From positions 124,001-188,000 of the IMG/VR virus record IMGVR_UViG_3300027782_000025: DNA of 64,000 nt. One strand, written 5' to 3'. Position numbers and translations under genes: made by a program. Below are positions 33,108 through 62,853 of this stretch, one piece after another; position 1 is the stretch's first letter; every line of letters begins with the position of its first letter. Below the pieces are notes generated by a model. That model was not told where the DNA came from. It ran no database searches and was given only the letters and a program-made list of their open reading frames with translations.

Positions 33108-36100
33108 TTATATATTGTAGTTTTTATCTGGCAATATATCTGGAAAATCCTGTCCGCCTTTATTCTTTTCAAAGGACAAAGCTCTACAATAATCAAGTTT
33201 AGGATAATTACTCTTGATGCGGTTTATTATCCTTATTTTAGGAACTTCGAGATCTACCTTTTTATTAATAATTACTATAATAGTGCGACTCTTGATTTCA
33301 TCGGTATAATTAGCCTCAACGAGATCTACGCAGGTGTTTGAAACCAAATAATATGGTTTATAAATGCTTTTCTTGAAATTTCTGGCGGCCATCAAAGATC
33401 CGACGGTAGCCAACTTGCCGTTAATCTGAAAACTTGGACTAAATAAATCGCGTTCGATCTTAAAAAATGTCGATTTATTCGCAGCAATAGAGATAGTCTC
33501 TGGGGTGCAACATAACTCACCAGCAAACGGGTCGCCTTCCTCTGGAGGAAATGGTACACAGACTAATCCATCTACACCATGTATTTTGGGTGTCAGAGTC
33601 GGACAATATGGTAATGGATATGGATAAGGCCCGTCTGGTACGATATAATATGAAATTGGACTACCAAATAATGTTGTCTCAAAAATAGCTGTTACTAAAA
33701 GAGCACTAATCCTCTTTTTAATAGTAAGCACGTATTCATACGACCCCACAACACCCATATCATTCTGAACAACTACAACATCATTGGGCGCAAATAAAGT
33801 CATGCTTTCGAGGACGCTCTGTATATCTGCGGCTGAAGCGTTATAATATATCCTATCTGAAAAGTAAATGGTTTTATCGACAGATTCGAATTTTAATATA
33901 TAAAACCCTGCAGTAGCATTACTATACGACCATCTAATCTTTTGCGGCTTACCTCCACCTATTTGAATTCTAACTACCGTGACTTCATCGCCAACTAGAT
34001 CGACCGACTGTATGCCCAACTGCTTTATAGGCTGAGCTGTCATTTTACCCTTATATTCCAAAGTCCAATCATAAACATTGCCGTTTTGGACTAATGTTAA
34101 TCCTATATCTTCAGCAGCATAAAAATCACAATTATCAATAATACTTTTCACTATGTCACTATTCGTAGCTGCTGCTTCGATAGGTGCTGTAGTACAAAAA
34201 GCACCGGCTGGGCTGTATAATGAAAGAGTATACCTGCCTGAGTTCGCTTTATAACTAAATTTTTGTACTTCGTTAACGCCGATTCCGCCGATCCAATCGA
34301 CATAAACCACATAATCCTTATTGGAAGTCGATAGCCTTGATACATTTTTTCCAGCCATAGAACCAACGAAATCTATGTGCCAAGGTCCAGTATATGGTCC
34401 ATCATAATTCGTAGTCTGGCCCGAAACAGTTACATTTCCAATACCTATGGACGGTAAGGCAAATAAGGCAGCTCTAACAGTATTAAGACTAGCATCATAA
34501 GGAATAGTAACTGTTTGCTCGCCATCAAAAAAAATCGTAAAAGCTCTATTAGAAGCAGAAACATTGCTTATAGTTTGTCTTTCATTCTTTGTACCGACCA
34601 CAGAACGATTTGTAAAAGCAAAGTAAGTTCCAATAAGCCCTTTGCTAACCGATTTCATGATAGGAATAGCCATACCCTTCAATGACCCGACGAACTCGAT
34701 TCTAAAACTTCTAGTTTCGACTGCTGTTACCAGAACATTGTTTGGTCCGATAAGCGTATTAGATTCTAATATAGTTTTTAAGGCTGCAGCAGTTGCATTA
34801 TAAGGAACAGTCACAGTCTGCGTCACGCCGCTTTTCGCAAACGTAAGTTTATAAGTACCACCATCCGCCAGCGGGACAGTTATATACTGCACTTCATTAG
34901 TAATTGAAGTCTCTGATATGTCAGCTATAACAAAATTTGGTTTTACCTTCTTAGCAAAAAGACTAATAGCTCCTATTTTTGGGTTAGGGATATCGCAGCC
35001 AGAAGGACGATCAGAAGTTAACGATGTACCATTATATATTAATTGGCTAGAAATCGGCGCGGAGCATTGATCAGCACCTGTTCCCGACGTATTATCTAAT
35101 ATTTCCTTGAAGGATAGCCATACGCCTACTTGCCCGTTTATCGCATTACCGATTGGCGGCCCCAAAGCAGTGCCGTTTGCGCTTGGTGGCCTAATATAGT
35201 CCCATCTACTGCTAGGAAATATTCTACTAAGATCTTGCGGTACTTCTAATATAGAACCTATATTAATGGTTCGAGTTAATCTCTTTGTATCTTTATTACA
35301 ATTGGTATAGTCAAGATGAACAACGATATCAGTAGCAGGATCTGGTTTGCAATTTGATTTATTATCAACACAACTTGGTGGTGTGTTGTTACGATCAATT
35401 ATCTTGTTCATTAAAAAGAAATATTCTATCGATTCTACAATCATGTCTGTTTTAAAATCACCAAAGAAAATCGAATAGGTATCTGCGATGTCCGTTGGAA
35501 CGTATTTCCCTGTAGCTTGGTCATATCTGCTAGAACCTGCAGGTATACACCAAATACAATTGTTATATAATGTAACGTCGGTTACTTTGAAATTGGTGAT
35601 AGCTTCCATCTGCGAATCACTTTGCCTTATTTGGTTTAGCACATATTGAGAAGGAGTGCCGCCATTACCGTTCTGCTTCCAATAATTGCATGTATCACTA
35701 TAATCGCAGTCAATTGGAACATTACTTCCAGCATAGGGCGATGACCTCCCATCAGTAATAACTTGACGATAAGCCATCTTCTTAACATTAGGCCTGCCGT
35801 AATCTCTATAAGTTACTTTAACAAAAGCTGAAAAAATATTCACTTCTTGGCGCGGGATACCGGTGACAGAAATGTTTAATTTTACATCTTTAATACCGTC
35901 TAGAATCACGGTCTGATCCAACAGCTTACATAACTTAATGCCATAAACGCCAACACCCTTAGGTATAAATTTAGAGCCATCAAATTCAGAAGTAATCGCC
36001 CCAGGTTTTAAATTATTCTTAAGCGTAATATTAAATGCTGCTGGCATGTCAAACAAGTAGGTCAATGACCCTGCAGTGGTAATTGCTGTCGGATTAACGC

Positions 36101-39056
36101 CTTGGAATGGGACCGATTGCACTTTTAGTTTTTCTAATGGTGTCGAGTCGAGTCGCGCCGGCAAATAATGAAACCTACTACCACCAGAAGTAATAATGTC
36201 GACCAAACCAGTAAGATTTTGCCCAGCATCGTCAGCACCTGTGCGATAATCAGATGTGGTTATGGTTAAAAAATATTTTCCTGCTTCAAGATTATAGTTC
36301 TTGCTGACAGATTCGCCATATCTAAGAACCAATTCATTACCAACAAAAGAATCAGAAACAGTAGCAACAGAACTGTTATTAAGATCCCAACAATTCATAT
36401 TTTTTGGCCCAAAATCATGCCTCTCAACACCCTTGACACCGACTGAACATTCTAAAGAGTCCCTAAAGAAAATACTGCTCACATTACCGCTTACCTCATA
36501 ACTATTTAATAAAACAGCTATAGAAGGAAAAAACTCGATACCTTTATTATCGACACCAGCGGATGGTACGGGCACATAATAATAATCAAGCATTATTTTG
36601 GTTGGCGAAGTGTCAAGCGATGCCCAAATAACAGAACCGCCAAAATCATCTATCGCTACCCAGTCTGCACGATTGGTGACAGGATAATATGCTGGTATAA
36701 TAAAAGTATCTAGCATATTATATTGTATCCCTGCCTGACTCGCAAACACTTTATTTAGAATCAAAGGGTTTATAGAGATACATCGGCCTGACTCTGGCGT
36801 AATTAAATTCTGATTAGTGTCTAAAATATCGTAGCACAACAAAAGCCCTGGCAATTTTTGGTTAGCGACAAATTCTGAAATTGGGGTAGCAGGCAAGTTC
36901 TTTATAAGATAGTTAAATATCGGCGCACACATAAAGCTAAAGCTACGCAGATTTGCCATCCCAGCCATAGGTAAATCAAGACTGACTATAGGAGTAATTT
37001 TAGTCACAATGCCTGTTTTATTGAAGATCGACACATCATAAACATAAGATCTTAGGATACTATAGCGTTTAATGTCTTGGGAGCCTGACGCATTAAACCC
37101 TACGAATAGAGCGCGATGGCCGGCAAATTCCGTAACGCCATTATAATCATAAGACGGCACATATCCTATACCAATACCAGTAATAGAAGGATATCTCCGT
37201 TCTGTCCTAGGTACTATATCTATACTATTAACTTCTATTTCTGATGATTTTCCTGTAATCACATCCACAGAATAAAGATGTCCAGAACCCGTGCCTATAA
37301 ACAATAACCTCATCCCAGGATCATACGCCTGAGCAGAAGGAGCATTATTGTCGAATCCTATGACATTATCAAATAAAAAAGGTAAAAAAGCAATTGCAGA
37401 ACGCTCTCGCGTTTTCATATTCATAGCAAAAAGCCTATAAGAAGCGTCATCAGACCGCTCTATATAAAAAACTCTATCAAACACTGAATCATAACTTATC
37501 AGAGATTCATTGTTTGCTAAAATCTCTGGTGCACGTGAGGATGTGTCTGGTAATGTGTAACTGCTGTTTATCTTAAAATGGGTCAGCGATTTTAAATTCG
37601 AACCTTTAAACAGAGACCCACCTTGCCATAATTCTTTAACTGAACCAAAGGCAGATACGCCTGGTGTCGTATTAGCGCCCACATAACCACATAAAGTATT
37701 AATAGAACTAGATATTTGGTCAAAATATTCACCGCCGGTTGCGGTTTGGCTATCTATAAGCACAACCGCTGCACTAGCGATACCAACCGATGCCACGAAA
37801 TTATAATAGTCTTGAGACGCGCTAATTGTCTCATCATTTAATATAAACAAAAATTTATGCCCACATTGTATGGCTTGCCGAAATGCTTCGAATTGATCAG
37901 AGCCACCCACAGCAGAGTCGACATAATTAAAATCATCGTCTAACGACAATCCGGTAGAACGATGGTCGACATAAATGCAAAAAATCTTCGTCGCTAAAGA
38001 TCTAAATCTAAGATAATCAGCTGGTTCTACTTTCTTGAGGTCAGCGCCGTTTAAAGAAAAATCATTATCAGCCATACCTGATAAATTCTTGGTCGAATCG
38101 ATTAATATCTGATAATTTAAAGGACCAGTATGACCACTAGTTCGAAACATCTGGTTAAGCATTAGACCACTAGCTGGTACTAAATCAAACCGCCAACTTC
38201 CATCTAAAGCCTTGCCGGAGCTTGTTAGAGCTAATTCCATCCTAAACCCGACAGATCTAACTATAGATGAAACTGCTATATTGCTAAGACTGCCATATGA
38301 TTGATTATTAAACCCATAAGTAAACGCATTCGCAGTCGAAACACCGATAATGTTAACAGTCGAAGAATTGACAGGCTCTGAAATCATGGCCGCATATTTA
38401 TCAACCATTATCCTATCGTTTTCGCAAGAATTATCCCAAAATCCCTTTAAAGTATTCAGTGAAAGCTTATAATATTGTTTACCAGCAAAGAACCCAATAT
38501 ATTCGGGCGTACCCCTGACTTTCGATATTGCTAACCTATAATCGTACCCACCACTAAGTAAAGCTTTGTTGGTTTGTAGCAAAGCCCTTCCTGGAGCGAC
38601 TCCTGTGTTTAAACTAGATGCATCTATGAAATGTAAGTCGATAGAACACTTATCACTATTCTTTCTACAAGAAACCGACGTACCGAATTTTTGAAAATTT
38701 ATTGTAGGTAGGTTCGGGATAGTCGATGTGTTAGTTGGTATACTTGCTGTTGTGTCTAAATTAATATCCTGCCCTAAGAAACTCACTGCATTAAACGATG
38801 CCAAAATCACATTCGGTCGTCTTATTAATTCCCTTAAAGAACCTGGGATTTTCTCTACATTAGTTATAAACTTGTTGGTGGGCGGTGCTGTAGCAGCGGG
38901 CGTGTCGCAGGCTTGATAATCGATACCATTTAGAATCCTAGGTAAACTGCTTTCAACAGTTTTATACTTATCATTACAAACCATTAGTAATGAATCGACA
39001 TCTACAGAGATTAATTCGACATAATTGGATCTCGATATATCTGATTGATCTGCCAT
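33108..39056 (-). CDS. Very large virion / receptor-binding-like protein (beta-propeller-like middle, four repeated C-terminal modules)
   Basis: 1982 aa; propeller-like blades (AYDPGMRLLFIGTGSGHLYSVDVITG); four NEVQ-type repeats. Confidence 0.7.
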   Translation of the reverse strand: MADQSDISRSNYVELISVDVDSLLMVCNDKYKTVESSLPRILNGIDYQACDTPAATAPPTNKFITNVEKIPGSLRELIRRPNVILASFNAVSFLGQDINLDTTASIPTNTSTIPNLPTINFQKFGTSVSCRKNSDKCSIDLHFIDASSLNTGVAPGRALLQTNKALLSGGYDYRLAISKVRGTPEYIGFFAGKQYYKLSLNTLKGFWDNSCENDRIMVDKYAAMISEPVNSSTVNIIGVSTANAFTYGFNNQSYGSLSNIAVSSIVRSVGFRMELALTSSGKALDGSWRFDLVPASGLMLNQMFRTSGHTGPLNYQILIDSTKNLSGMADNDFSLNGADLKKVEPADYLRFRSLATKIFCIYVDHRSTGLSLDDDFNYVDSAVGGSDQFEAFRQAIQCGHKFLFILNDETISASQDYYNFVASVGIASAAVVLIDSQTATGGEYFDQISSSINTLCGYVGANTTPGVSAFGSVKELWQGGSLFKGSNLKSLTHFKINSSYTLPDTSSRAPEILANNESLISYDSVFDRVFYIERSDDASYRLFAMNMKTRERSAIAFLPFLFDNVIGFDNNAPSAQAYDPGMRLLFIGTGSGHLYSVDVITGKSSEIEVNSIDIVPRTERRYPSITGIGIGYVPSYDYNGVTEFAGHRALFVGFNASGSQDIKRYSILRSYVYDVSIFNKTGIVTKITPIVSLDLPMAGMANLRSFSFMCAPIFNYLIKNLPATPISEFVANQKLPGLLLCYDILDTNQNLITPESGRCISINPLILNKVFASQAGIQYNMLDTFIIPAYYPVTNRADWVAIDDFGGSVIWASLDTSPTKIMLDYYYVPVPSAGVDNKGIEFFPSIAVLLNSYEVSGNVSSIFFRDSLECSVGVKGVERHDFGPKNMNCWDLNNSSVATVSDSFVGNELVLRYGESVSKNYNLEAGKYFLTITTSDYRTGADDAGQNLTGLVDIITSGGSRFHYLPARLDSTPLEKLKVQSVPFQGVNPTAITTAGSLTYLFDMPAAFNITLKNNLKPGAITSEFDGSKFIPKGVGVYGIKLCKLLDQTVILDGIKDVKLNISVTGIPRQEVNIFSAFVKVTYRDYGRPNVKKMAYRQVITDGRSSPYAGSNVPIDCDYSDTCNYWKQNGNGGTPSQYVLNQIRQSDSQMEAITNFKVTDVTLYNNCIWCIPAGSSRYDQATGKYVPTDIADTYSIFFGDFKTDMIVESIEYFFLMNKIIDRNNTPPSCVDNKSNCKPDPATDIVVHLDYTNCNKDTKRLTRTINIGSILEVPQDLSRIFPSSRWDYIRPPSANGTALGPPIGNAINGQVGVWLSFKEILDNTSGTGADQCSAPISSQLIYNGTSLTSDRPSGCDIPNPKIGAISLFAKKVKPNFVIADISETSITNEVQYITVPLADGGTYKLTFAKSGVTQTVTVPYNATAAALKTILESNTLIGPNNVLVTAVETRSFRIEFVGSLKGMAIPIMKSVSKGLIGTYFAFTNRSVVGTKNERQTISNVSASNRAFTIFFDGEQTVTIPYDASLNTVRAALFALPSIGIGNVTVSGQTTNYDGPYTGPWHIDFVGSMAGKNVSRLSTSNKDYVVYVDWIGGIGVNEVQKFSYKANSGRYTLSLYSPAGAFCTTAPIEAAATNSDIVKSIIDNCDFYAAEDIGLTLVQNGNVYDWTLEYKGKMTAQPIKQLGIQSVDLVGDEVTVVRIQIGGGKPQKIRWSYSNATAGFYILKFESVDKTIYFSDRIYYNASAADIQSVLESMTLFAPNDVVVVQNDMGVVGSYEYVLTIKKRISALLVTAIFETTLFGSPISYYIVPDGPYPYPLPYCPTLTPKIHGVDGLVCVPFPPEEGDPFAGELCCTPETISIAANKSTFFKIERDLFSPSFQINGKLATVGSLMAARNFKKSIYKPYYLVSNTCVDLVEANYTDEIKSRTIIVIINKKVDLEVPKIRIINRIKSNYPKLDYCRALSFEKNKGGQDFPDILPDKNYNI
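33720..34898 (-). repeat. Four degenerate ~95-aa protein repeats: NE(V/R)Q...G.(Y/F).L.F...T..I.YNA....(V/I)...LE......N(V/I).V......(W/Y).I.F
   Basis: Units begin NEVQYITV, NERQTISN, NEVQKFSY and KPQKIRWS. Conservation is at protein level only; the DNA has diverged. Confidence 0.8.
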
Positions 39057-40250: not shown

Positions 40251-41063
40251 CTAAATACTCCTAAATAAATTATTAAACACTTCTAAAGCCAATTTAAACG
40301 TTTCTTTCTTTCCAATCGTACTGCCGAAACGCCTTCCAAGCGACGGTCTAAATATAGCATATTTACCACCATTCAAAATATGTTCATCTATAGCCTTAAT
40401 AATATTTGTAGCGCCTTGACCGACAGGATAAAAACCGGAACCAGTTTTAAAATCCCTAGCAATTATGCTATAAACACAAGTTTTAAGAGGCTCAAACCAA
40501 CGATCGTGAGGATTCTTATTGCTTTTCTCCATAAAACGGCAAGGATCATATGATAATTTAAACCTTTTGTGTGACGATAAAAACTTCTGAAGACTTTCTG
40601 TGTTATCTAGTAACATCGTATCAGTCATTTCTAACACCGGTACAAGCGACATCGACACAGCAAATGACGATAGTTTACTAATGAAATCATTGAAACTTGT
40701 CATATCGATAAATGATGATTTTTCGATTCCGATCTGAATAGCTTTGGCTTTAAAATATGATGCGATCGAAAGTTCTCTATCTATATCCTTTTGTACTATT
40801 GTTTTTCCATGTCCCAATTCTATCCTTACGATATTGATAGGCATATCTGCCAATTTTTTCTTAATTCTTTCTATGGTAATGTCCGGCAAAGAAGTTAGTG
40901 ATAATCCATTTATATTAAGTATAGATGCTGATTTGAATCCGCTGTCTCTGATAAGATCTATAGATTCATCGATGTTATCATGATGTTCGTCGATGCAGGC
41001 CGAGACTTCTAAATTATTACGATAGGTCAATGACGTGGTCATATTGTGGGCCAGTTCCAACAA
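40251..41063 (-). CDS. Xylose-isomerase / AP-endonuclease-2-like TIM barrel with a degenerate metal site
   Basis: SACIDE, PVLE, SYDPCRF, IIARD and PVGQG follow the spacing of the sugar-phosphate isomerase/epimerase family. Likely start is 41042. Confidence 0.7.
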   Translation of the reverse strand: MLELAHNMTTSLTYRNNLEVSACIDEHHDNIDESIDLIRDSGFKSASILNINGLSLTSLPDITIERIKKKLADMPINIVRIELGHGKTIVQKDIDRELSIASYFKAKAIQIGIEKSSFIDMTSFNDFISKLSSFAVSMSLVPVLEMTDTMLLDNTESLQKFLSSHKRFKLSYDPCRFMEKSNKNPHDRWFEPLKTCVYSIIARDFKTGSGFYPVGQGATNIIKAIDEHILNGGKYAIFRPSLGRRFGSTIGKKETFKLALEVFNNLFRSI

Positions 41064-42216
41064 GCGTTACAGGTATTCCGGCAACATCCTCAAGCATCTT
41101 TATGAAATCAAGGATCTTCGGGGTAAGTTTGTCTCTTGATGATGAAGCAAAGCAAGTCCAGTCGATGTAATTAGCAAAATTAAGAGCTAATTTGGTAGCG
41201 CCATTAACCATCACAGCCTCACGCAGTTGTCTTTTAGAAAAAGAAAATACTCTTCTGACCCTCTTTGTAACTGTCGTTTTCTCTTTTTCTCTTAAGATAG
41301 TTGCATATTCTAATGGCATCTCTGATTTTCTAGCTATTTCTTCCCAATCAATTTCGACCTGATCGTCATACCCTCCGCCAGAATATCCCTTCTGAACGCC
41401 TTCTTCAATCACATTACCGACTCTGATTGGATAAGGCCGAAGTACAAGGTAAACATCACCAAGGTACTTTGGAGAAATCCCCATATCGGCTAAGTTTTGA
41501 ACTGCAGAAGTGCCACGGCTAGTGCAAGTGGGGTATGAATGACCGTGGTTGATGTCAAGTGAGAATCCTTGTGCGCCTTCATGTAAAAATGTGAACGTAG
41601 CTCTAAGCACACAGTCAATATATTCGTGAAGAGCTTCACAATGGTGTTTACACATTACATTAAATGGATCAAAAAGCGACATGTCCTCTAATATGGCAGA
41701 AGGTCGTGTCCACGTTTTGCAAAATACAAATCTGCTTAACTCTTCATAATCCACTGCTAGCTTCGTCCCCGGCAGCCTTTGTATCTTGTCTGCTATGGCA
41801 GCACCACAACCTTGCATTGTGCTCGCTAGATGCTTAGTGCTGTCTTTGCCTTCATTTTCCCTTGCTCTGTGCTCTTCCGTGATTACCATAGCTCTTTGGT
41901 GAATAATAAGCCTATCTATACTTCCTGTTAATTCTACTTCTTTCATCAGCTGTAGTAAAGTAAATGCAGAAGAAGAACCCATGATTATCCAAGGATTGTA
42001 ATTTGGTAGCCATTTCCTCAAGATCGCAGCCGATGGCATCGCTTTTGCAATATATGCAGTACCGTCTACGTTAACAGCTGTATGACCAGCATTAGCCATG
42101 TTTGTATTTGATAAAAATTCGGGTCTGTATTTTTGTGCGAGATAAGAAGTTATCAGACCTTTACCAGTGCTGCCGAACTGACCATCAGTAACCACATTGA
42201 ACTTACCGCGTTGCAT
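41017..42216 (-). CDS. purZ: PurZ-type N6-succino-2-amino-2'-deoxyadenylate synthase (adenylosuccinate synthase paralog)
   Basis: QFGSTGKG (Ser16 in place of the PurA catalytic Asp), NAGHT, STMQG, HEGAQGFSL, YPTCTSR, PIRVG, TTVTKRVRRVFSFS, LNFANY (not the PurA motif TKLD), GTGP. Confidence 0.85.
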   Translation of the reverse strand: MQRGKFNVVTDGQFGSTGKGLITSYLAQKYRPEFLSNTNMANAGHTAVNVDGTAYIAKAMPSAAILRKWLPNYNPWIIMGSSSAFTLLQLMKEVELTGSIDRLIIHQRAMVITEEHRARENEGKDSTKHLASTMQGCGAAIADKIQRLPGTKLAVDYEELSRFVFCKTWTRPSAILEDMSLFDPFNVMCKHHCEALHEYIDCVLRATFTFLHEGAQGFSLDINHGHSYPTCTSRGTSAVQNLADMGISPKYLGDVYLVLRPYPIRVGNVIEEGVQKGYSGGGYDDQVEIDWEEIARKSEMPLEYATILREKEKTTVTKRVRRVFSFSKRQLREAVMVNGATKLALNFANYIDWTCFASSSRDKLTPKILDFIKMLEDVAGIPVTLVGTGPQYDHVIDLS

Positions 42217-45370: not shown

Positions 45371-46717
45371 ATGAGTTATGAACGCCAACTGTCAAAGCTT
45401 TACCTACGAGGTTCTTTAGTGAACGTATCGATGAAAGAAATCGACCCACAGGAAAAGCAATTAGTCGAATTAACATTTTCTAATCTCATCAACGAACCAG
45501 AATTAGAACGCTCAAAAACCAAATTTATAAAAAGGTTTAATAGAACAATACGTGCTGACTATAAAGACGATGTCACTACATCAGAGCAAGATTACTTAGT
45601 GGCATTATGGAGAGCATTAGTAGATCTACTGGTAAGTCGCAAAATCAATGGCTTCACATGCCAGAACTGTAAAGCAACCAGCTACCAAAATAAAATAGGT
45701 CTGACTATACAATTTAATCAATGCTACCACATTTCGCCATGCTGCAATAGAATCTTGGTAGGCCAAGAATTTAAAAATCCTGACGACTGCGAATTGAAGA
45801 CTATAGAATCATCTAGGTCTCCAATATTCGCTAACAAGGGCGAAAGGAAGTATAGCGACGAGATACTAGCCGACCGCCAAAGCCTTATAAAGTTTGTCAG
45901 TAAGCACATATCGAACTATCAGCAGCAAGTAATCAAAGAGAATCAACAACAGAAGTATCTTACCGAAAAGACTGTACAAGTTCCAGCTACACTTAGTATA
46001 ATTAGCGCTTTCGCTGCGGTCTTGATGAAATCAGGCACTAATTTCGAAGTCAAGTATAAAGCACCAAACGGCCAGCTGATATCGACTAACCTATTCCATG
46101 ATGTTGATAATAAGGAAGATATCTTAAACAGGATAATGAGAGATATCAGCCAAGATTATAATGAATATCATATAGTGTTTGATACATTCTATTGTGGGAC
46201 TGACGATATTATCTCTATCATGCTAATATTGCAAAACCACGCGGATTGTGGTATAATACACGAATTGCATGATGACAAGATAGTCATAATCAGTAGAGAA
46301 AACCAAAGTGTCAGTATGAAAAAGACATTTAAAGAGAAAATCAAATTCACTACCGGTAGAACAGGTGTGAACTCAAACGGCGATGATTCTGAAGGATTGG
46401 ACAACTTAGTTCAGGGAGGATTGGCTATGCTTGGATTTGGTGATGATCACGAGACTCAAGTGGAAATAAAAGAGATAATCCACAAGGTCGCGGATAACTT
46501 AAATGATTTAAGTAGGATAGTATGGATTTTGCAGGTGCAGAGTTCAGGCTTTATGATCGACGGCGAAATCGACCGTTTTCACGAATATACTTCTAAATAT
46601 CCAGGCGCAAAGCTTAACAATACCGATCTTGCCGATTATCTTGGCGTAAGCACAAGAATAGTTAAGAGATGCAAAGAAGAAATCGAAACGCAATGTTTCT
46701 TCCATGGTTTAGGTTAG
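45371..46717 (+). CDS. Sigma-70-like DNA-binding protein with an inserted zinc ribbon and C-terminal HTH
   Basis: EQDYLVALWRA (region-2-like), CQNC...PCC, and C-terminal NTDLADYLGVSTRIVKR (HTH); AAAGGA Shine-Dalgarno. Confidence 0.55.
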   Translation: MSYERQLSKLYLRGSLVNVSMKEIDPQEKQLVELTFSNLINEPELERSKTKFIKRFNRTIRADYKDDVTTSEQDYLVALWRALVDLLVSRKINGFTCQNCKATSYQNKIGLTIQFNQCYHISPCCNRILVGQEFKNPDDCELKTIESSRSPIFANKGERKYSDEILADRQSLIKFVSKHISNYQQQVIKENQQQKYLTEKTVQVPATLSIISAFAAVLMKSGTNFEVKYKAPNGQLISTNLFHDVDNKEDILNRIMRDISQDYNEYHIVFDTFYCGTDDIISIMLILQNHADCGIIHELHDDKIVIISRENQSVSMKKTFKEKIKFTTGRTGVNSNGDDSEGLDNLVQGGLAMLGFGDDHETQVEIKEIIHKVADNLNDLSRIVWILQVQSSGFMIDGEIDRFHEYTSKYPGAKLNNTDLADYLGVSTRIVKRCKEEIETQCFFHGLG

Positions 46718-47098
46718 GATCTTTGGGCGGTTTAAGACTTTATCAAAAAACGCAATTGCGTCTGCTTTTGCGTTAGGATTATAACTACGCCAATTAAGCA
46801 AATGGCCGAAAGTCCAATGGCAATGACTAGCAGATTCGCATAGTGTAATAAGATTATTCGGATCTAATTCTAGCTCAGGGGCTAGATGGTAAGGCATGAG
46901 GTGGTGAACTTCAAGCGAAACTCTACCACCACACGCCAAACACATTCCATTTAATTCAAGATGAACCGCTCTAGCTTTTTTCCACTTAGAAGATCTAGGC
47001 TTAGAGGCAAAATCTGGTTTCGCAAATAAAAGCCTTGGTTTATTTAAATAATTAAACCTAAAATTACCTTTATCGCTACTCTTAAGATTTTTCCCCAT
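46709..47098 (-). CDS. HNH endonuclease
   Basis: CLACG...LEVHH..PYH..PELELDPNNLITLC....CHWTFGH. Confidence 0.88.
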   Translation of the reverse strand: MGKNLKSSDKGNFRFNYLNKPRLLFAKPDFASKPRSSKWKKARAVHLELNGMCLACGGRVSLEVHHLMPYHLAPELELDPNNLITLCESASHCHWTFGHLLNWRSYNPNAKADAIAFFDKVLNRPKILT

Positions 47099-48804: not shown

Positions 48805-48999
48805 TTATTTAAACCAATGATCATCATGGCCATCAGGGATGATTATATTATCATCACCGATGAATCTGCGTTCGTCTCTGGCTGATAACTCGGTGTGGTC
48901 TCTTTTTTTCCTGCACTGTTTACAATATCTAACGCCAGGGTCATTACTGACGAGTGTCCCGTTACACCATCCTAAACATTTTACTTTTTTGCCTTTCAT
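48805..48999 (-). CDS. Small zinc-ribbon protein
   Basis: CLGWC...RYCKQC; start refined to MKGKKVKC. Confidence 0.6.
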   Translation of the reverse strand: MKGKKVKCLGWCNGTLVSNDPGVRYCKQCRKKRDHTELSARDERRFIGDDNIIIPDGHDDHWFK

Positions 49000-49015: not shown

Positions 49016-49630
49016 TCAGAAGTCAATTATCTTGACTATTATATGTTTACTTTCGGCGTATTCCAAAGCATTCTCAGTAATACTTGGAGCCACTATATAT
49101 CCTACACATTTCTTATTTATAGCTGATAAATATTCAACGTATCTAATAGCTTGTGATACATTAGCTATAGAAGCTTTTTTTCTTTTAACCTCATAAGAAT
49201 GATAAATTGCAGAAGCGTCGATCCTTACAAGATCTATTAACCCCAAAGATTTTGTGTCATATTCTTCGATATACTCATCGTCTGGAAAATCAGCCTTTAA
49301 CTCACAAATCAGCTTTTGAACTAATTCGGCCTCAGTCCTAAGCATTAGTATTTTATTATCATGCCACTCAGCAGGGCTAAAAGAATGAATCATTTCACAT
49401 ATCGTTATCTTGATGGTTTCAGATCGATTTCTTGCAATTATGTTATTACTATCGAACTCTATCCTAGATCCTGCAGACATATAGTTGATCGGTTTAATAA
49501 GCCTAGAAGTATGAATCTGTAACGATGCATCGGACTTTATTATTATTAGATAAACACCGTTCGATAATTTGCTCAAACCCCTACCATCATACTCGACTGA
49601 ACAATTCGCTAAAATAATATGGCTTATCAA
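49016..49630 (-). CDS. nucS: Mismatch-specific endonuclease NucS/EndoMS homologue
   Basis: N-domain ANCSVEYDGRG...LIIIKSDASLQIH...KPINYM; nuclease domain EEY...GLIDLV...YEVKRKKA....VSQAIRY...GYIVAPSIT. Confidence 0.85.
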   Translation of the reverse strand: MISHIILANCSVEYDGRGLSKLSNGVYLIIIKSDASLQIHTSRLIKPINYMSAGSRIEFDSNNIIARNRSETIKITICEMIHSFSPAEWHDNKILMLRTEAELVQKLICELKADFPDDEYIEEYDTKSLGLIDLVRIDASAIYHSYEVKRKKASIANVSQAIRYVEYLSAINKKCVGYIVAPSITENALEYAESKHIIVKIIDF

Positions 49631-49641
49631 ATAAAAACCTC

Positions 49642-49661
49642 GGTAAATAAGAGTATTTACC
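49642..49661. promoter_or_regulatory. Perfect 8-bp inverted repeat GGTAAATA-agag-TATTTACC between divergent genes
   Basis: Read directly from the sequence; each arm carries TAAATA facing one of the two divergent genes. Confidence 0.55.
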
Positions 49662-50607: not shown

Positions 50608-52422
50608 TTAATTCCCAGATAGTATAGAAAATCTGTTAATTCTTTTTACCTTCAATTCCCTATCAAAAACATCAAACATTTGGTTACGGTGTGAAATAAT
50701 TAATATATTGTCGATCCTAGATGACAAATCATTTCTAATAATGCTAATAAGGCCTTCGATACCATCTTCATCCATCCTGCCATCGACCTCATCTAGTACC
50801 ATCAGATTACACTGTCTACCATACATTACTTCATAAAAATCATAAGATGCAAGCATGAAAGCAAGATCAGTTCTTTTCCTTTCGCCGCCTGACTGATATT
50901 CATAACCCCACATATTACTTGTTATCCTAAGGTCATTTTCGATCTTTATCTTAATGTCTAGACCAAGTATACCCAAATAATGTTCTAATCTTGAATTAAT
51001 ATATGGCAAGTGTTCTTCGCACATAAAGCTTTTAACCTTATTCCTATCATTATATGATTTGTATAAATAGGTATAATGCTTGTCTAAAACTGTAATGTCT
51101 TCTAAATCACTACTATGCTTTACAATATTGGCTAGAATGTCTTTAAGTCTACCATCCAACCGCTCAATGATGGTTTGATTTGGGTCGCAATCCGTTTCTG
51201 CTTCTGTCCTTAATAATGTTAACCTTTTAATCTCAGCTTTATAATTTAGAACTATTGTCGAAAGATTATTAGCTTCCATGATCGTTATGTTAGGAATTTT
51301 TGTGGCCAGCATCGCCTCATATTTTTTGATAACCTTGTTGCTTTCTTCTCTGGCAGCCGAAGCATCTAGCAGCTGTGTGTTAAATATCGATAATTCTTTT
51401 TCTATCTTATCTAAATTGTTAGTTATCATACTTGAAGGTATAGACTGTTGGCAAGCAACGCAACTCTTACCCTGTAGCTTATTAACCTCATCACGCCGCT
51501 TTTTTAAAACAGATAGATTAGATTCTATCGTGGCAATCGTCCTAAAGTGCCCAGCATCTTCAGACTTCAATCTGTCTATCTCGGCTTTAATCTTTTCTAT
51601 CAATCTCCATTTTTCAGTTAATTTGTCGATGTCAGGAATAGTTATACTACCGATTTTTCCATTTATAGTTTCGATCATGGAATCAATATCAGAAATCCTT
51701 TTAGCTCTTTTGATCTCATAAGCGCCACTTTCTTCACGATAAGACTCGATATCACTTATCGTTCTATCTCTATTGGCTTCAAGGTCTGTGATTTTAGATT
51801 TAATATTTGTGAATAGGAATTGGGCATTATCGGATTTAGCTTTTGCTATCTTGGCGTAAAAACTAAACCTATCGACTCTTAGTATTTTTTCAAGAGCTTT
51901 TTTCCTAGCCACCTCGCTCATTTCCATCCAAGACCGACCATATTGATTAAAGAAAACACTGCCACAAAATATGTCATAATCGAGGTTAAAAGTCTTATTC
52001 AACTGCGATTGCATAGCTTTAGATGTAGAAACAGTGTCGGCGGATATCCTTGTCTCGTCGCCATCTCTACTAAATAACACTTCTGTAGTGCCACCTTTTT
52101 GTCTTCGCCTTATAATCTGATCACCATTTTTAAAATCGATAATCACTTCACAGGTCTTGCCGGTAAAGTGATTAATTATAGAATCACCAGCCGATGAAGC
52201 GTGCATAGTTCGACCAAACAGTCCCCACAGCACGACATTTGGAATTGAGCTCTTACCTGAACCATTTGATTTGCGAATGTCTTCTGAACCGACTTGAGTC
52301 GAATTCCCAGTATCTATTTCACCTGTAATCAGACAACTCCCAGGGTCTTCAAGCGATAGCACCGATTCATAATCACCATAAGATAAAAAATTGCGCCACT
52401 TTACCGATTTGATTTCCAACAT
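50608..52422 (-). CDS. Recombination ATPase, T4 gp46 / SbcC / Rad50-like
   Basis: WRNFLSYG, Walker A SNGSGKSS, coiled coil with CVAC zinc hook, signature SGGERKR, Walker B LMVLDEVD, H-loop IISH. Confidence 0.93.
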   Translation of the reverse strand: MLEIKSVKWRNFLSYGDYESVLSLEDPGSCLITGEIDTGNSTQVGSEDIRKSNGSGKSSIPNVVLWGLFGRTMHASSAGDSIINHFTGKTCEVIIDFKNGDQIIRRRQKGGTTEVLFSRDGDETRISADTVSTSKAMQSQLNKTFNLDYDIFCGSVFFNQYGRSWMEMSEVARKKALEKILRVDRFSFYAKIAKAKSDNAQFLFTNIKSKITDLEANRDRTISDIESYREESGAYEIKRAKRISDIDSMIETINGKIGSITIPDIDKLTEKWRLIEKIKAEIDRLKSEDAGHFRTIATIESNLSVLKKRRDEVNKLQGKSCVACQQSIPSSMITNNLDKIEKELSIFNTQLLDASAAREESNKVIKKYEAMLATKIPNITIMEANNLSTIVLNYKAEIKRLTLLRTEAETDCDPNQTIIERLDGRLKDILANIVKHSSDLEDITVLDKHYTYLYKSYNDRNKVKSFMCEEHLPYINSRLEHYLGILGLDIKIKIENDLRITSNMWGYEYQSGGERKRTDLAFMLASYDFYEVMYGRQCNLMVLDEVDGRMDEDGIEGLISIIRNDLSSRIDNILIISHRNQMFDVFDRELKVKRINRFSILSGN

Positions 52423-60007: not shown

Positions 60008-61741
60008 TTATATATTTAAAGGTTGGTGTAAATGAACCTGCCTCAAACTAGAAATATCGACCACCGCTTCTTTAAACCACGCCGGAAACATCGCCTTGGC
60101 TTTTTTAAATAATCTCTCGAAAGACCCATCTATAATAAATGTGTCGGCATGATCTGCGTGAGACCTAACACTTCTACCAACGGATTGCACAAGCCTTAAA
60201 ACAGTAATCCAGTCATAATATTTATCATCTAATTTCATCCTCGCCGCCAACTGCTTATCATCATAGAAATTAGCAAAAGGCATCTTGCAAACGATCTGAA
60301 AACGGCTCAAATCATCCTTAAGATCAACGCCCTCATAAAGAGAAGGAGAAATAATGATGCTATCATGGGATAAAGCATGAGAGTCTAAAAGGTCAGACCT
60401 ATTAGGATAATCCTTAGAAGATCTAAAACGCTTCGAAACACTAGATTCACAATTCAGGCTAAGATACTCCATAATAGCGTTATTATGAGTATGAATAATT
60501 CCCCTTTGGTGGCCAAATTTATTAACGATAGCTTCGACTGACCTAACCAAAGGTGGACCCCAATCGACCATCTTATCCTTACCACCGGTCATTTGAGCAG
60601 CCGGCCAATAGTAAATCGGCCTATTCTCGACAGGAAAGCGATTCTTCATCCTAAGAGCAGCAACGTCAGACCTATCGACACCAACGGTGTTACAAAAAGT
60701 GTCGACATCAAGAATAGTAGCACTCATCAGAAGCACCTTGTTACCATGCCTAAAAATGAAACGCTCGGCAAAATCACCAACGATAACTGGTCTCAAGTTA
60801 AGCACACGGTATTCACCGACAGAAGGAGAAAACTTAATTTCGTGATCCATAACCCATTCGCAATCATCGAAATCATTATCCACAAACATTTCGATCTTGC
60901 CGGCAACACCCAGAAAGTCTCTAGCGGCTATATGGTCCTCATCTGCAATTGCGATATCCTCAAGCTCCTTAAAAACACCAATAATATTCTCATTTAAAAA
61001 CCATTGCTTATACTGATTAGGACTATCGAAAACCGGAAGGGCATAGCCACGTTCTTTTAAATCGATATCGCTAATCGTAACGTTAACAAAAGAAAGTATT
61101 TCTTGACCAAGATTATGTGCCTCATCGGTAATAAGTAGACTGCGGGGATCAACGAAACGATCTTTGGTAAAAGTGGTCTGATAGAGGAAAGAGCTAAAAT
61201 TCATACACAGAAATCTAGAATTGATCGCCTTATGAAGTTGCTCATAATAGGCACAGGCGCTGAAAGTGCGTCCAGGGGGCAAGAAAATATTCTCCTCTGC
61301 GTTCTCGAAGCAAAAGCGGCACTTAACGCCAGAGCCAAGCAAATTGGTCTTACAGACACCAACGGAGCAATTCCTAAAACCATTGTCGAGCTTGTTAATA
61401 TCCGAAGCGGCAAGGGTAAGACTCCATTTCTTTTTGCCTTTCATTCTTTCCCAGACGTCGCATTCATAAGCATTCCTGCCTTTAAGCTCCGTCACGATAG
61501 AGCCGTATTCAGATACTAACTGGTCTTGCAGTTGCTTAGTAGCAGTTAGCCAATACATATTATCGAAAAATTTAGCAACCGTCATCCCGATGGCAGTCTT
61601 ACCAGAGCCAGTGGGAGCTTCGATTATAACGATCTTTTTACCAGAATTAAAAGAATCAAGCACGAACTTGATAGCTTCCCTCTGTCCATCGCGGTAAGCA
61701 GATTTAACAAAGAATTTATCTATATCATCCGTATTATACAT
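60008..61741 (-). CDS. DinG/XPD/YoaA-family SF2 helicase with a Cys cluster
   Basis: EAPTGSGKT, LKGRNAYEC...C..GVC...C.FC...CAYY, DEAH, SATI, EGVDL, QSVGRSVR. Confidence 0.92.
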   Translation of the reverse strand: MYNTDDIDKFFVKSAYRDGQREAIKFVLDSFNSGKKIVIIEAPTGSGKTAIGMTVAKFFDNMYWLTATKQLQDQLVSEYGSIVTELKGRNAYECDVWERMKGKKKWSLTLAASDINKLDNGFRNCSVGVCKTNLLGSGVKCRFCFENAEENIFLPPGRTFSACAYYEQLHKAINSRFLCMNFSSFLYQTTFTKDRFVDPRSLLITDEAHNLGQEILSFVNVTISDIDLKERGYALPVFDSPNQYKQWFLNENIIGVFKELEDIAIADEDHIAARDFLGVAGKIEMFVDNDFDDCEWVMDHEIKFSPSVGEYRVLNLRPVIVGDFAERFIFRHGNKVLLMSATILDVDTFCNTVGVDRSDVAALRMKNRFPVENRPIYYWPAAQMTGGKDKMVDWGPPLVRSVEAIVNKFGHQRGIIHTHNNAIMEYLSLNCESSVSKRFRSSKDYPNRSDLLDSHALSHDSIIISPSLYEGVDLKDDLSRFQIVCKMPFANFYDDKQLAARMKLDDKYYDWITVLRLVQSVGRSVRSHADHADTFIIDGSFERLFKKAKAMFPAWFKEAVVDISSLRQVHLHQPLNI

Positions 61742-61764: not shown

Positions 61765-62853
61765 ATGGCAAACATCGCAATAACGGCAGACATTCATTTA
61801 GGACTCACGGGCAGATTAAATGATACCATTTATGCACTAAAAACAATACGTTCATATTGTCAAGTAGCTAACATCGACATCGTCCTGATCCTCGGCGACC
61901 TCTTCCATGATAGAAAATATCTAGAGATAGATGTTTTAAACAAAGCGACAGAATTCTTTAACGAATGCAGAGAGCTAAAGCAGACATGGATCGTATTTCC
62001 TGGCAACCACGACATGTATCTCAGGCACAGCTGGAAATGTAATAGTTTAGATCCGATAAATGATAAATTAGTGGTTATTAACGATATAAAAGATCTTGTA
62101 ATAGAAGGAAGACATTTCCATATCTTGCCGTATATGACCAAAGAAAGCACATATCGCAAAGTCTTAGAATTACTTTCACAAAAAGCTGATGCCGAAACTA
62201 TACTTCTAACGCACATTGGTGTAAATGGCGCCACCTATAACACCTGCTTTACCCAAGCTTCGAATTCTTCTATAACATTTAACGACACACCATATAGGAA
62301 GATCTTCACTGGGCATTATCACAATAGGCAATCGATAGGGGATAGGGTATATTATCCAGGGTCCCCAATACCTTTCAAACACGATGAAGGCGGTATTCCC
62401 CATGGATTCTTGGTATTAGATACTGACACTTTAGAACAGAAGTTCGTTAACATCCAGAAAGCTGGTCAGAAGTTCTTCCCGACTGAAGCTCCACCACCGA
62501 ATTTTTATACCATCATTCACACAGATGTTAATTCGACATCTGAAGAAGTAATTAAGAATAACCACATTCGTGTCGTGTTGGGTGAAACCATCGCGGAGAA
62601 TGAGAAAGAATCGATTAGACTACTACTAGAAAACTACAATCCTAAAAGCATAAAGTTCATCACCCCGGTCGAAAAGATAACTGCTGGCAGAAAAGAAATA
62701 AAAACTTACGGCATCAGCGATTACTTCGACAGATGGATTAAAAAAGATAAAAATTTTAAAGAGCTTGATGATAAACTGATATTAAAACTAAATCAGGAAA
62801 TCATACAACTCGGCGATGAACAATACCTATCAGAATCCCAAGAAATAGAATAA
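61765..62853 (+). CDS. Recombination nuclease, T4 gp47 / SbcD / Mre11-like
   Basis: ADIHLG, GDLFH, GNHD, THIG, GHYH, YPGSP metallophosphoesterase motifs. Confidence 0.92.
   Translation: MANIAITADIHLGLTGRLNDTIYALKTIRSYCQVANIDIVLILGDLFHDRKYLEIDVLNKATEFFNECRELKQTWIVFPGNHDMYLRHSWKCNSLDPINDKLVVINDIKDLVIEGRHFHILPYMTKESTYRKVLELLSQKADAETILLTHIGVNGATYNTCFTQASNSSITFNDTPYRKIFTGHYHNRQSIGDRVYYPGSPIPFKHDEGGIPHGFLVLDTDTLEQKFVNIQKAGQKFFPTEAPPPNFYTIIHTDVNSTSEEVIKNNHIRVVLGETIAENEKESIRLLLENYNPKSIKFITPVEKITAGRKEIKTYGISDYFDRWIKKDKNFKELDDKLILKLNQEIIQLGDEQYLSESQEIE

Follow-up and report, generated by a model that had tools for sequence, protein, structure and literature searches.

A NucS/EndoMS-family endonuclease gene without the clamp-binding tail in an uncultured freshwater phage that carries a PurZ-type gene

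Genomic locus of the phage nucS gene

The analyzed stretch of DNA (64,000 nucleotides, hereafter the window) contains an ORF of 204 codons at positions 49016..49630 on the minus strand, with a TGA stop codon at 49016-49018 and a protein product ending in HIIVKIIDF. Translation starts at a TTG codon (49628-49630), which is preceded by the Shine-Dalgarno sequence GAGG (49638..49641, minus strand) at a spacing of 7 nt; both elements are conserved in relatives down to 53% protein identity (designated L003, L006, L007, and L008), whereas gene callers that chose an internal ATG produced 154-aa truncations. Comparison of four diverged copies of the gene gave dN/dS values of 0.04-0.09, and thus it is a protein-coding gene under strong purifying selection. 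An earlier note, made from the sequence alone, described this ORF as a compact two-domain NucS/EndoMS endonuclease encoded by a phage, and this observation is confirmed by our analysis.

The window is part of a 75-kb IMG/VR virus record, which is rated by CheckV as 21% complete and carries genes for tail sheath, baseplate, tape-measure-like protein, primase, helicase, and ribonucleotide reductase. The identical NucS is encoded on a near-identical longer viral contig of 274.6 kb (70% complete). DNA sequencing runs that hold the stretch come from freshwater and lake metagenomes of 21 studies, and the G+C content is 36-42%. Scans of species genomes (185,579 genomes for the clade signature) with the signature of this clade and with the phage RecA found nothing. 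Contigs from RNA libraries, including a metatranscriptome run, cover the neighboring genes but not nucS, and so do not show its expression.

The gene neighborhood is conserved in relatives. Read along the minus strand, it includes an SbcD/Mre11-like gene on the opposite strand, a helicase, about nine further genes, a 250-aa ORF, an SbcC/Rad50-like gene, a 183-aa ORF, a divergent DUF5856 gene, nucS, a 64-aa Zn-ribbon ORF, eight or so small genes, and a PurZ-type gene. The SbcC/Rad50 (T4 gp46)-like ATPase (50608..52422, minus strand; phrog_77, 5.8e-76; Pfam SMC_N) is located about 1 kb from nucS on the same strand, and its synteny is retained in L003, L004, L008, and L009. The SbcD/Mre11 (gp47)-like nuclease (61765..62853, plus strand; phrog_100, 1.2e-49; Pfam Metallophos) and the DNA helicase (60008..61741, minus strand; ResIII/Helicase_C_2; phrog_2488, 2.7e-96) belong to the same conserved block, and these three genes lie within about 1-12 kb of nucS; in a further locus, L020, they are directly fused in order helicase-SbcD-SbcC-small ORF-NucS.

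The PurZ-type adenylosuccinate synthetase homolog of the 2-aminoadenine (Z) pathway (41017..42216, minus strand) is located 6.8 kb from nucS. This assignment is based on the match to phrog_1211 (1.9e-63), on the best PDB hits to the PurZ structures of phiVC8 (6fm1, 9.6e-44) and S-2L (7odx), and on the P-loop QFGSTGKG, which is the same as in phiVC8 PurZ and in which the catalytic Asp of GDEGKG is replaced (GSTGKG here, GSCGKG in relatives). The Z content of this genome is inferred from PurZ alone; MazG and HD models, used to detect MazZ and DatZ, found nothing on the 274-kb contig.

The 274-kb contig additionally encodes RecA (331 bits), a UvsY-like mediator, an SSB, a weak PolA-like ORF, and a C-family Pol III alpha that is split into two frames, whereas a family B polymerase was not found. 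No gp45-type clamp (PF02916, a model applied to this contig only) was found in it, and no beta-clamp domain (PF00712, PF02767, PF02768) or clamp loader (PF13177) was found there or in two complete related genomes, in searches with Pfam models that did not include PCNA. We initially interpreted these results as the absence of clamp usage by the phage; however, this reading was withdrawn upon identification of the split Pol III alpha, since the host beta clamp may well be used. What stands is that the phage NucS lacks the canonical clamp-binding motif.

Domain organization and conserved residues

Both Pfam NucS domains were identified above their gathering thresholds. The N-terminal PH-like DNA-binding and dimerization domain NucS_N (PF21003) matches residues 5-83 (49382..49618, minus strand) with an E-value of 1.7e-16 and 60.4 bits against a cutoff of 23.9. 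The C-terminal RecB-like PD-(D/E)XK nuclease domain occupies residues 100-204 (49019..49333, minus strand), of which residues 123-203 match NucS_C (PF01939) with an E-value of 6.7e-10 and 39.5 bits against a cutoff of 24. A phmmer search of PDB aligned the protein over about 190 residues with Pyrococcus abyssi NucS (2vld, 1.2e-20) and Thermococcus kodakarensis (Tko) EndoMS (5gke, 1.3e-17), which is far beyond chance. The refuting condition set beforehand, an assignment to a generic Mrr or restriction-like nuclease without the NucS N-domain, is therefore not fulfilled. On the other hand, the NCBIfam NucS equivalog models match along the whole length but score far below their curated cutoffs (NF003270, archaeal type, 101.3 bits against 216; NF002876, actinobacterial type, 71.3 bits against 252), thus the protein is a family member but not an equivalog of either cellular type. 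No PHROG family matches this protein.

We mapped functional residues using the PDB alignment and the roles described for Tko EndoMS (PMC6829318), where the flipped G or T is sandwiched by Tyr41 and Trp77, its O6 or O4 is read by Asn76 and the Trp77 backbone, and Arg44 holds the phosphate. In the alignment of 48 sequences (13 phage proteins and 35 cellular proteins), the pocket residues Y14, R17, and N49 (Tko Y41, R44, and N76), the catalytic residues D133, E147, and K149 (Tko D165, E179, and K181), and Q160 and Y164 are invariant, and the same residues are invariant across 22 diverse proteins of the subfamily described below. Two features completely separate the phage and cellular groups. The stacking Trp (Tko W77) is Tyr (Y50 in the window protein) in 13 of 13 phage proteins and Trp in 35 of 35 cellular proteins; an aromatic stack is still possible, although specificity may differ. 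In addition, all 35 cellular proteins carry a C-terminal tail of 14-19 residues ending in QxxLF, while the phage proteins end at DF or at DF followed by 3-10 unrelated residues. In agreement with this, NucS_C is matched only at positions 26-107 of 124 in the phage protein but up to 124 of 124 in actinobacterial genes. The phage proteins also lack the N-terminal extension of roughly 21 residues.

The earlier note tentatively related the terminal IDF to the clamp-binding motif of T4 clamp partners, and this idea is not supported. The VKIIDF terminus aligns with the last strand of the nuclease domain and not with a tail; although D203-F204 is conserved across the subfamily, it is placed right after the last strand with high model confidence and fits neither QL[SD]LF nor a PIP box, making a clamp role unlikely.

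The AlphaFold2 model (pLDDT 91.4) is most similar to DNA-bound EndoMS (5gke_A, E-value 2.3e-19) followed by NucS 2vld in a Foldseek search, with both matches over the full length, whereas the next unrelated fold scores only 3.7e-4; a library of viral structures contained no two-domain match. The homodimer prediction scored 0.83 in the median of three runs against 0.00 for the best of three controls, with at least 80% of contacts shared between the runs and partner pLDDT of at least 88. In the calibration of this method, 21 of 30 proteins solved as pairs of one chain reached the mark, compared to 0 of 23 proteins solved as single chains. The predicted interface (residues 3-53 and 81-99) corresponds to the N domain, as in solved NucS; however, since a like complex is already solved, the prediction shows likeness rather than binding.

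Distribution of the tail-less Tyr-type NucS

Word-based searches detected only the close lineage and distant cellular NucS proteins, which suggested an isolated clade; however, an exhaustive profile search disproved this view. It returned 931 hits at E<=1e-3, including 95 at E<=1e-30. Among the best 149 representatives of clusters at 50% identity, 128 have Tyr at the Trp position (hereafter Y-type), 15 have Trp, and 3 have Phe. Nearly all Y-type proteins are 198-230 aa long and have no clamp motif, and they mostly end in DF or DFD; they also have an almost invariant Trp (W89) in the interdomain linker. The survey of genomic context covered 17 contexts rather than all 931 hits, and each of them is an uncultured aquatic phage contig of 36-408 kb, most of them of jumbo size.

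Six representatives with 34-42% identity to the window protein are located on contigs of 84-171 kb with giant ORFs and genes for CsrA, ThyX, dUTPase, PhoH, RecA, DnaB, and Pol III alpha. Three of these six metagenome loci have a PurZ-type gene (GSCGKG) 8-10 kb away, and one has NucS directly after helicase-SbcD-SbcC. A pattern scan of IMG/VR revealed eight more viral contigs of 36-408 kb, all eight of which have a split Pol III alpha and six of which have a PurZ-type gene; the two contigs without it are 10% and 13% complete, while both complete genomes (408 kb, and 371 kb with terminal repeats) possess it. All three IMG/VR contigs of the lineage of the window also have PurZ. Thus, a PurZ-type gene is present in every Y-type NucS record that is at least 27% complete. 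Beta clamp and clamp loader were absent from all records searched, and no MutS was found in seven records including the two complete genomes, although these absences rest on Pfam models and, in several records, on incomplete genomes.

Among 50,697 deposited phage records, only Halogranum tailed virus 1 (HGTV-1) carries a two-domain NucS, gp43, which is annotated as RecB-like nuclease. The gut "Bacteriophage sp." records MT838864 and MT836018 contain high-GC actinobacterial-type nucS genes ending in E(H/S)RLF; these are UNVERIFIED records with cellular-looking neighbors, and we consider such matches as contamination (a third record, MT839036, matched in the same way but is not covered by this inspection). 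None of the 140 deposited phages with PurZ gave a NucS match.

In the phylogenetic tree of 56 sequences, the lineage of the window is monophyletic (100/99) on a stem of 3.07 substitutions per site, separate from HGTV-1 and from every cellular group sampled; its attachment to two actinobacterial sequences is flagged as long-branch attraction. In a larger quick tree of 128 sequences, the Y-type proteins cluster strongly (7 changes against 36.5 expected by shuffling) but do not form one clean clade. Neither tree resolved the donor of the gene or the number of its origins.

Comparison with known systems

The phage protein shares with archaeal NucS/EndoMS (P. abyssi 2VLD, T. kodakarensis 5GKE) the two-domain order, the fold as predicted, the catalytic D-E-K, Gln and Tyr residues, the pocket Tyr, Arg, and Asn, and the predicted N-domain dimer, with 27-28% identity over the Foldseek structural alignment; it differs by the absence of about 25 N-terminal residues and of the 15-25 residue C-terminal linker with the PIP box (QLxxLF), by Tyr in place of W77, by W89 in the linker, and by its score of 101 bits against a cutoff of 216 with the NCBIfam equivalog PRK04247. 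In comparison with actinobacterial and Deinococcus NucS proteins of the clamp-dependent non-canonical mismatch repair, it has a core length similar to the actinobacterial proteins and the same motifs, and resides in genomes where no MutS was found, as in Actinobacteria, but lacks the tail (in Actinobacteria the clamp motif is [E/K]-[L/Y]-[T/R]-L-F). HGTV-1 gp43 also has no long tail and is located among replication and recombination genes, next to a Holliday-junction resolvase and RadA; however, it belongs to an archaeal virus without PurZ, keeps Trp in the pocket, and does not group with the Y-type phage clade. The surrounding gene set of the window and the 274-kb contig (SbcCD-like, RecA, UvsY-like, SSB) matches the logic of break-driven recombination in T4 (gp46/47, UvsX, UvsY, gp32). 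T4 endonuclease VII also cuts mismatches and branches, but it is unrelated to NucS, and the phage replicase is a split C-family Pol III alpha rather than the T4 family B enzyme with the gp45 clamp.

Two papers on NucS state that this protein is absent from viruses (PMC5290159; PMC8228993), and literature searches found nothing that links NucS with jumbo phages or PurZ. The phage-specific subfamily, which the earlier note did not recognize, comprises at least 128 clusters and departs consistently from the cellular enzyme by the loss of the clamp-binding tail and by Tyr in place of the stacking Trp.

Proposed function

We propose, with a probability of roughly 0.6, that the gene encodes an active homodimeric endonuclease of the NucS/EndoMS family in a phage-specific form. 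In this view, two N-terminal PH-like domains would pair and read a distorted or mismatched base pair, each flipping one base into a pocket built from Y14, N49, and Y50, and the two C-terminal domains (D133/E147/K149) would close on the duplex and cut both strands. In a cell full of sibling phage genomes, the break would be resected by the SbcC/SbcD-like nuclease and helicase and then repaired by the phage RecA, UvsY-like mediator, and SSB, which would either correct the error or prime recombination-dependent replication; the same solution has been proposed for polyploid Thermococcales (PMC7343888). This is the most economical reading, since the elements used by EndoMS to find and cut a mismatch are kept under purifying selection across a subfamily diverged to about 35% identity, with the exception of the identity of one aromatic residue. 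Our analysis establishes the family membership, the conserved catalytic and pocket residues, the fold and the dimer as predictions, purifying selection, the phage location, the loss of the tail, and the link with jumbo phages carrying PurZ and Pol III alpha, whereas mismatch specificity, double-strand cutting, the hand-off to SbcCD/RecA, clamp independence, and any benefit tied to Z-DNA are inferred. The activity that defines NucS/EndoMS, mismatch-specific double-strand cleavage (G:T, G:G, T:T) leaving 5-nt 5' overhangs, is thereby assigned to the phage protein by homology only. The interpretation given in the earlier note, namely a phage-encoded mismatch repair enzyme or recombination initiator that is useful if host repair handles Z-DNA poorly, is thus partly supported: the genuine two-domain NucS homology, the phage location, and the co-occurrence with a PurZ-type gene hold, also in relatives with a NucS of only 34-42% identity, while its functional part remains an inference.

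Several considerations weaken this reading, including the lack of biochemical data for any subfamily member, the low equivalog scores, and the Trp-to-Tyr replacement. In Corynebacterium glutamicum, the clamp interaction is needed for efficient cleavage and for low mutation rates (PMC8228993), whereas the canonical tether is absent here and the phage enzyme is expected to work without it; the enzyme may be intrinsically active, it may use another partner, or the conserved DF(D) end may have a role of its own. Moreover, P. abyssi NucS was first characterized as a flap or branched-DNA nuclease (PMC7343888).

The latter activity suggests an alternative role, possible but less likely, as a structure-specific nuclease that trims flaps, splayed arms, or branched intermediates of recombination-dependent replication, or debranches concatemers before packaging, alongside SbcCD. 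The cleavage of branched and splayed DNA by P. abyssi and T. gammatolerans NucS (PMC7343888), the location among recombination genes in the phages and in HGTV-1, and the lesser importance of a clamp tether for such a role agree with this alternative; however, a pure flap nuclease would have little reason to keep the invariant residues that hold the flipped G or T in EndoMS, and the model resembles the mismatch-DNA-bound form best. We consider even less likely a role in competition or exclusion, where the enzyme would cut heteroduplexes with diverged co-infecting phages, or host or non-Z DNA, to limit recombination with rivals or help degrade the host genome. NucS-like PD-(D/E)XK domains are used in defense nucleases, and phages commonly carry nucleases for host DNA breakdown; nevertheless, the full NucS architecture with the mismatch pocket is retained without an added sensor or modification-reading domain, the gene keeps its syntenic position within a conserved replication and recombination block over deep divergence, and its weak TTG start is typical of a low-level housekeeping nuclease.

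A Z-DNA-adapted surveillance role, in which the altered pocket would be tuned to lesions or mispairs peculiar to 2-aminoadenine genomes, such as the G:T pair left when Z is deaminated to guanine or a Z:C mispair, is attractive but also unlikely on present evidence. Deamination of 2,6-diaminopurine at C6 gives guanine, the pairing with PurZ is consistent, and the Tyr-for-Trp change is specific to this phage subfamily. However, all carriers look like one broad jumbo-phage group with a split Pol III alpha, so that the association may reflect shared ancestry alone; furthermore, the deposited PurZ-bearing phages gave no NucS match, HGTV-1 has NucS without PurZ, and the unchanged N49 predicts ordinary G/T recognition. 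In its most speculative form, which is also improbable, Y-type NucS may be the dedicated fidelity enzyme of 2-aminoadenine genomes, a clamp-independent mismatch endonuclease that co-evolved with PurZ in jumbo phages and removes G:T pairs arising from misincorporation of G for Z or from deamination of Z. Both errors yield only normal bases, so no glycosylase can see them; the resulting breaks would drive recombination-dependent replication, and the pocket change and the conserved DF(D) end would be adaptations to Z-DNA or to a new partner.

The Y-type subfamily offers a natural experiment on whether NucS needs the clamp at all, and it is a first candidate for virus-encoded non-canonical mismatch repair. 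It also provides a testable link to Z-genomes, as host methyl-directed repair and many nucleases may not work normally on Z-DNA. If its inferred activity is correct, a small clamp-independent mismatch cutter from a mesophile could also be a useful mismatch-detection reagent.

Other features flanking nucS

The 64-aa Zn-ribbon ORF (48805..48999, minus strand) is co-oriented with nucS and starts 16 nt after its stop codon. It has no Pfam or PHROG hit and is conserved in L003-L009 but absent next to NucS in 13 other Y-type loci; thus, it is specific to this lineage and was rejected as a conserved partner of NucS. On the other side of the gene, the 49-bp divergent intergenic region between nucS and the DUF5856 gene contains a perfect 8-bp inverted repeat, GGTAAATA-AGAG-TATTTACC (49642..49661), with arms that are conserved and a loop that is variable in close relatives.

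Genes and sequence elements surrounding nucS and purZ

The PurZ gene (window 41017..42216, minus strand) is adjacent to a 270-aa ORF at window 40251..41063 on the same strand, for which no Pfam hit was obtained. This ORF is homologous (28% identity, E 8e-36) to the AP_endonuc_2/xylose-isomerase-like TIM-barrel gene that directly follows PurZ in three loci of distant relatives (L017, L018, and L021). MazG and HD genes were not found on the 274-kb contig. This conserved pair may represent an unrecognised accessory of the Z pathway in these phages. Inside the conserved block between NucS and PurZ, we identified an HNH endonuclease gene (window 46709..47098, minus strand); it is present at the same place in relatives, so it is not a recent homing insertion. 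A giant ORF of 1982 aa with almost no family matches is located at window 33108..39056 (minus strand), and its counterparts of 1758-5107 aa lie next to NucS in the relatives' loci L016-L021.

The 64-aa Zn-ribbon ORF at window 48805..48999 (minus strand), with the pattern MKGKKVKCLGWC...C.QC, starts 16 nt after the NucS stop and is conserved in the window's lineage only; it is absent beside NucS in 13 other loci encoding the Tyr-pocket (Y-type) form of NucS. In one relative's locus, L020, NucS is preceded by a different 59-aa CxxC...CxxC ORF. The 49-bp divergent region between NucS and the DUF5856 gene contains a perfect 8-bp inverted repeat with a 4-nt loop (window 49642..49661), the arms of which are conserved in close relatives while the loop varies. 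An RNA-library contig begins at 49671, 9 nt before the DUF5856 ATG.

DNA polymerase III alpha genes in this phage group

In every record of this phage group, namely loci L022 and L023 (213.4-216.0 kb of contig G001) and eight further IMG/VR records, the C-family DNA polymerase III alpha gene is split into two reading frames of about 475-535 aa and about 830-1265 aa. No beta clamp or clamp loader gene was detectable, even in the two complete genomes.

NucS in other records filed as viral, and a conserved linker residue

HGTV-1 gp43 (locus L012, KC292026.1 35019..35687), which is annotated as a "RecB-like nuclease," is a full two-domain NucS that sits beside a Holliday-junction resolvase, family B polymerase, and RadA; this contradicts published statements that no virus has NucS. 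Two "Bacteriophage sp." records from human faecal viromes (loci L013 and L014; MT838864.1 and MT836018.1) carry high-GC actinobacterial nucS with the beta-clamp motif and cellular-looking neighbours, and are probably bacterial DNA filed as phage. Within the Y-type subfamily, a Trp in the interdomain linker (W89 of the NucS encoded in the window, 49364..49366) is nearly invariant and lies in the predicted dimer interface.
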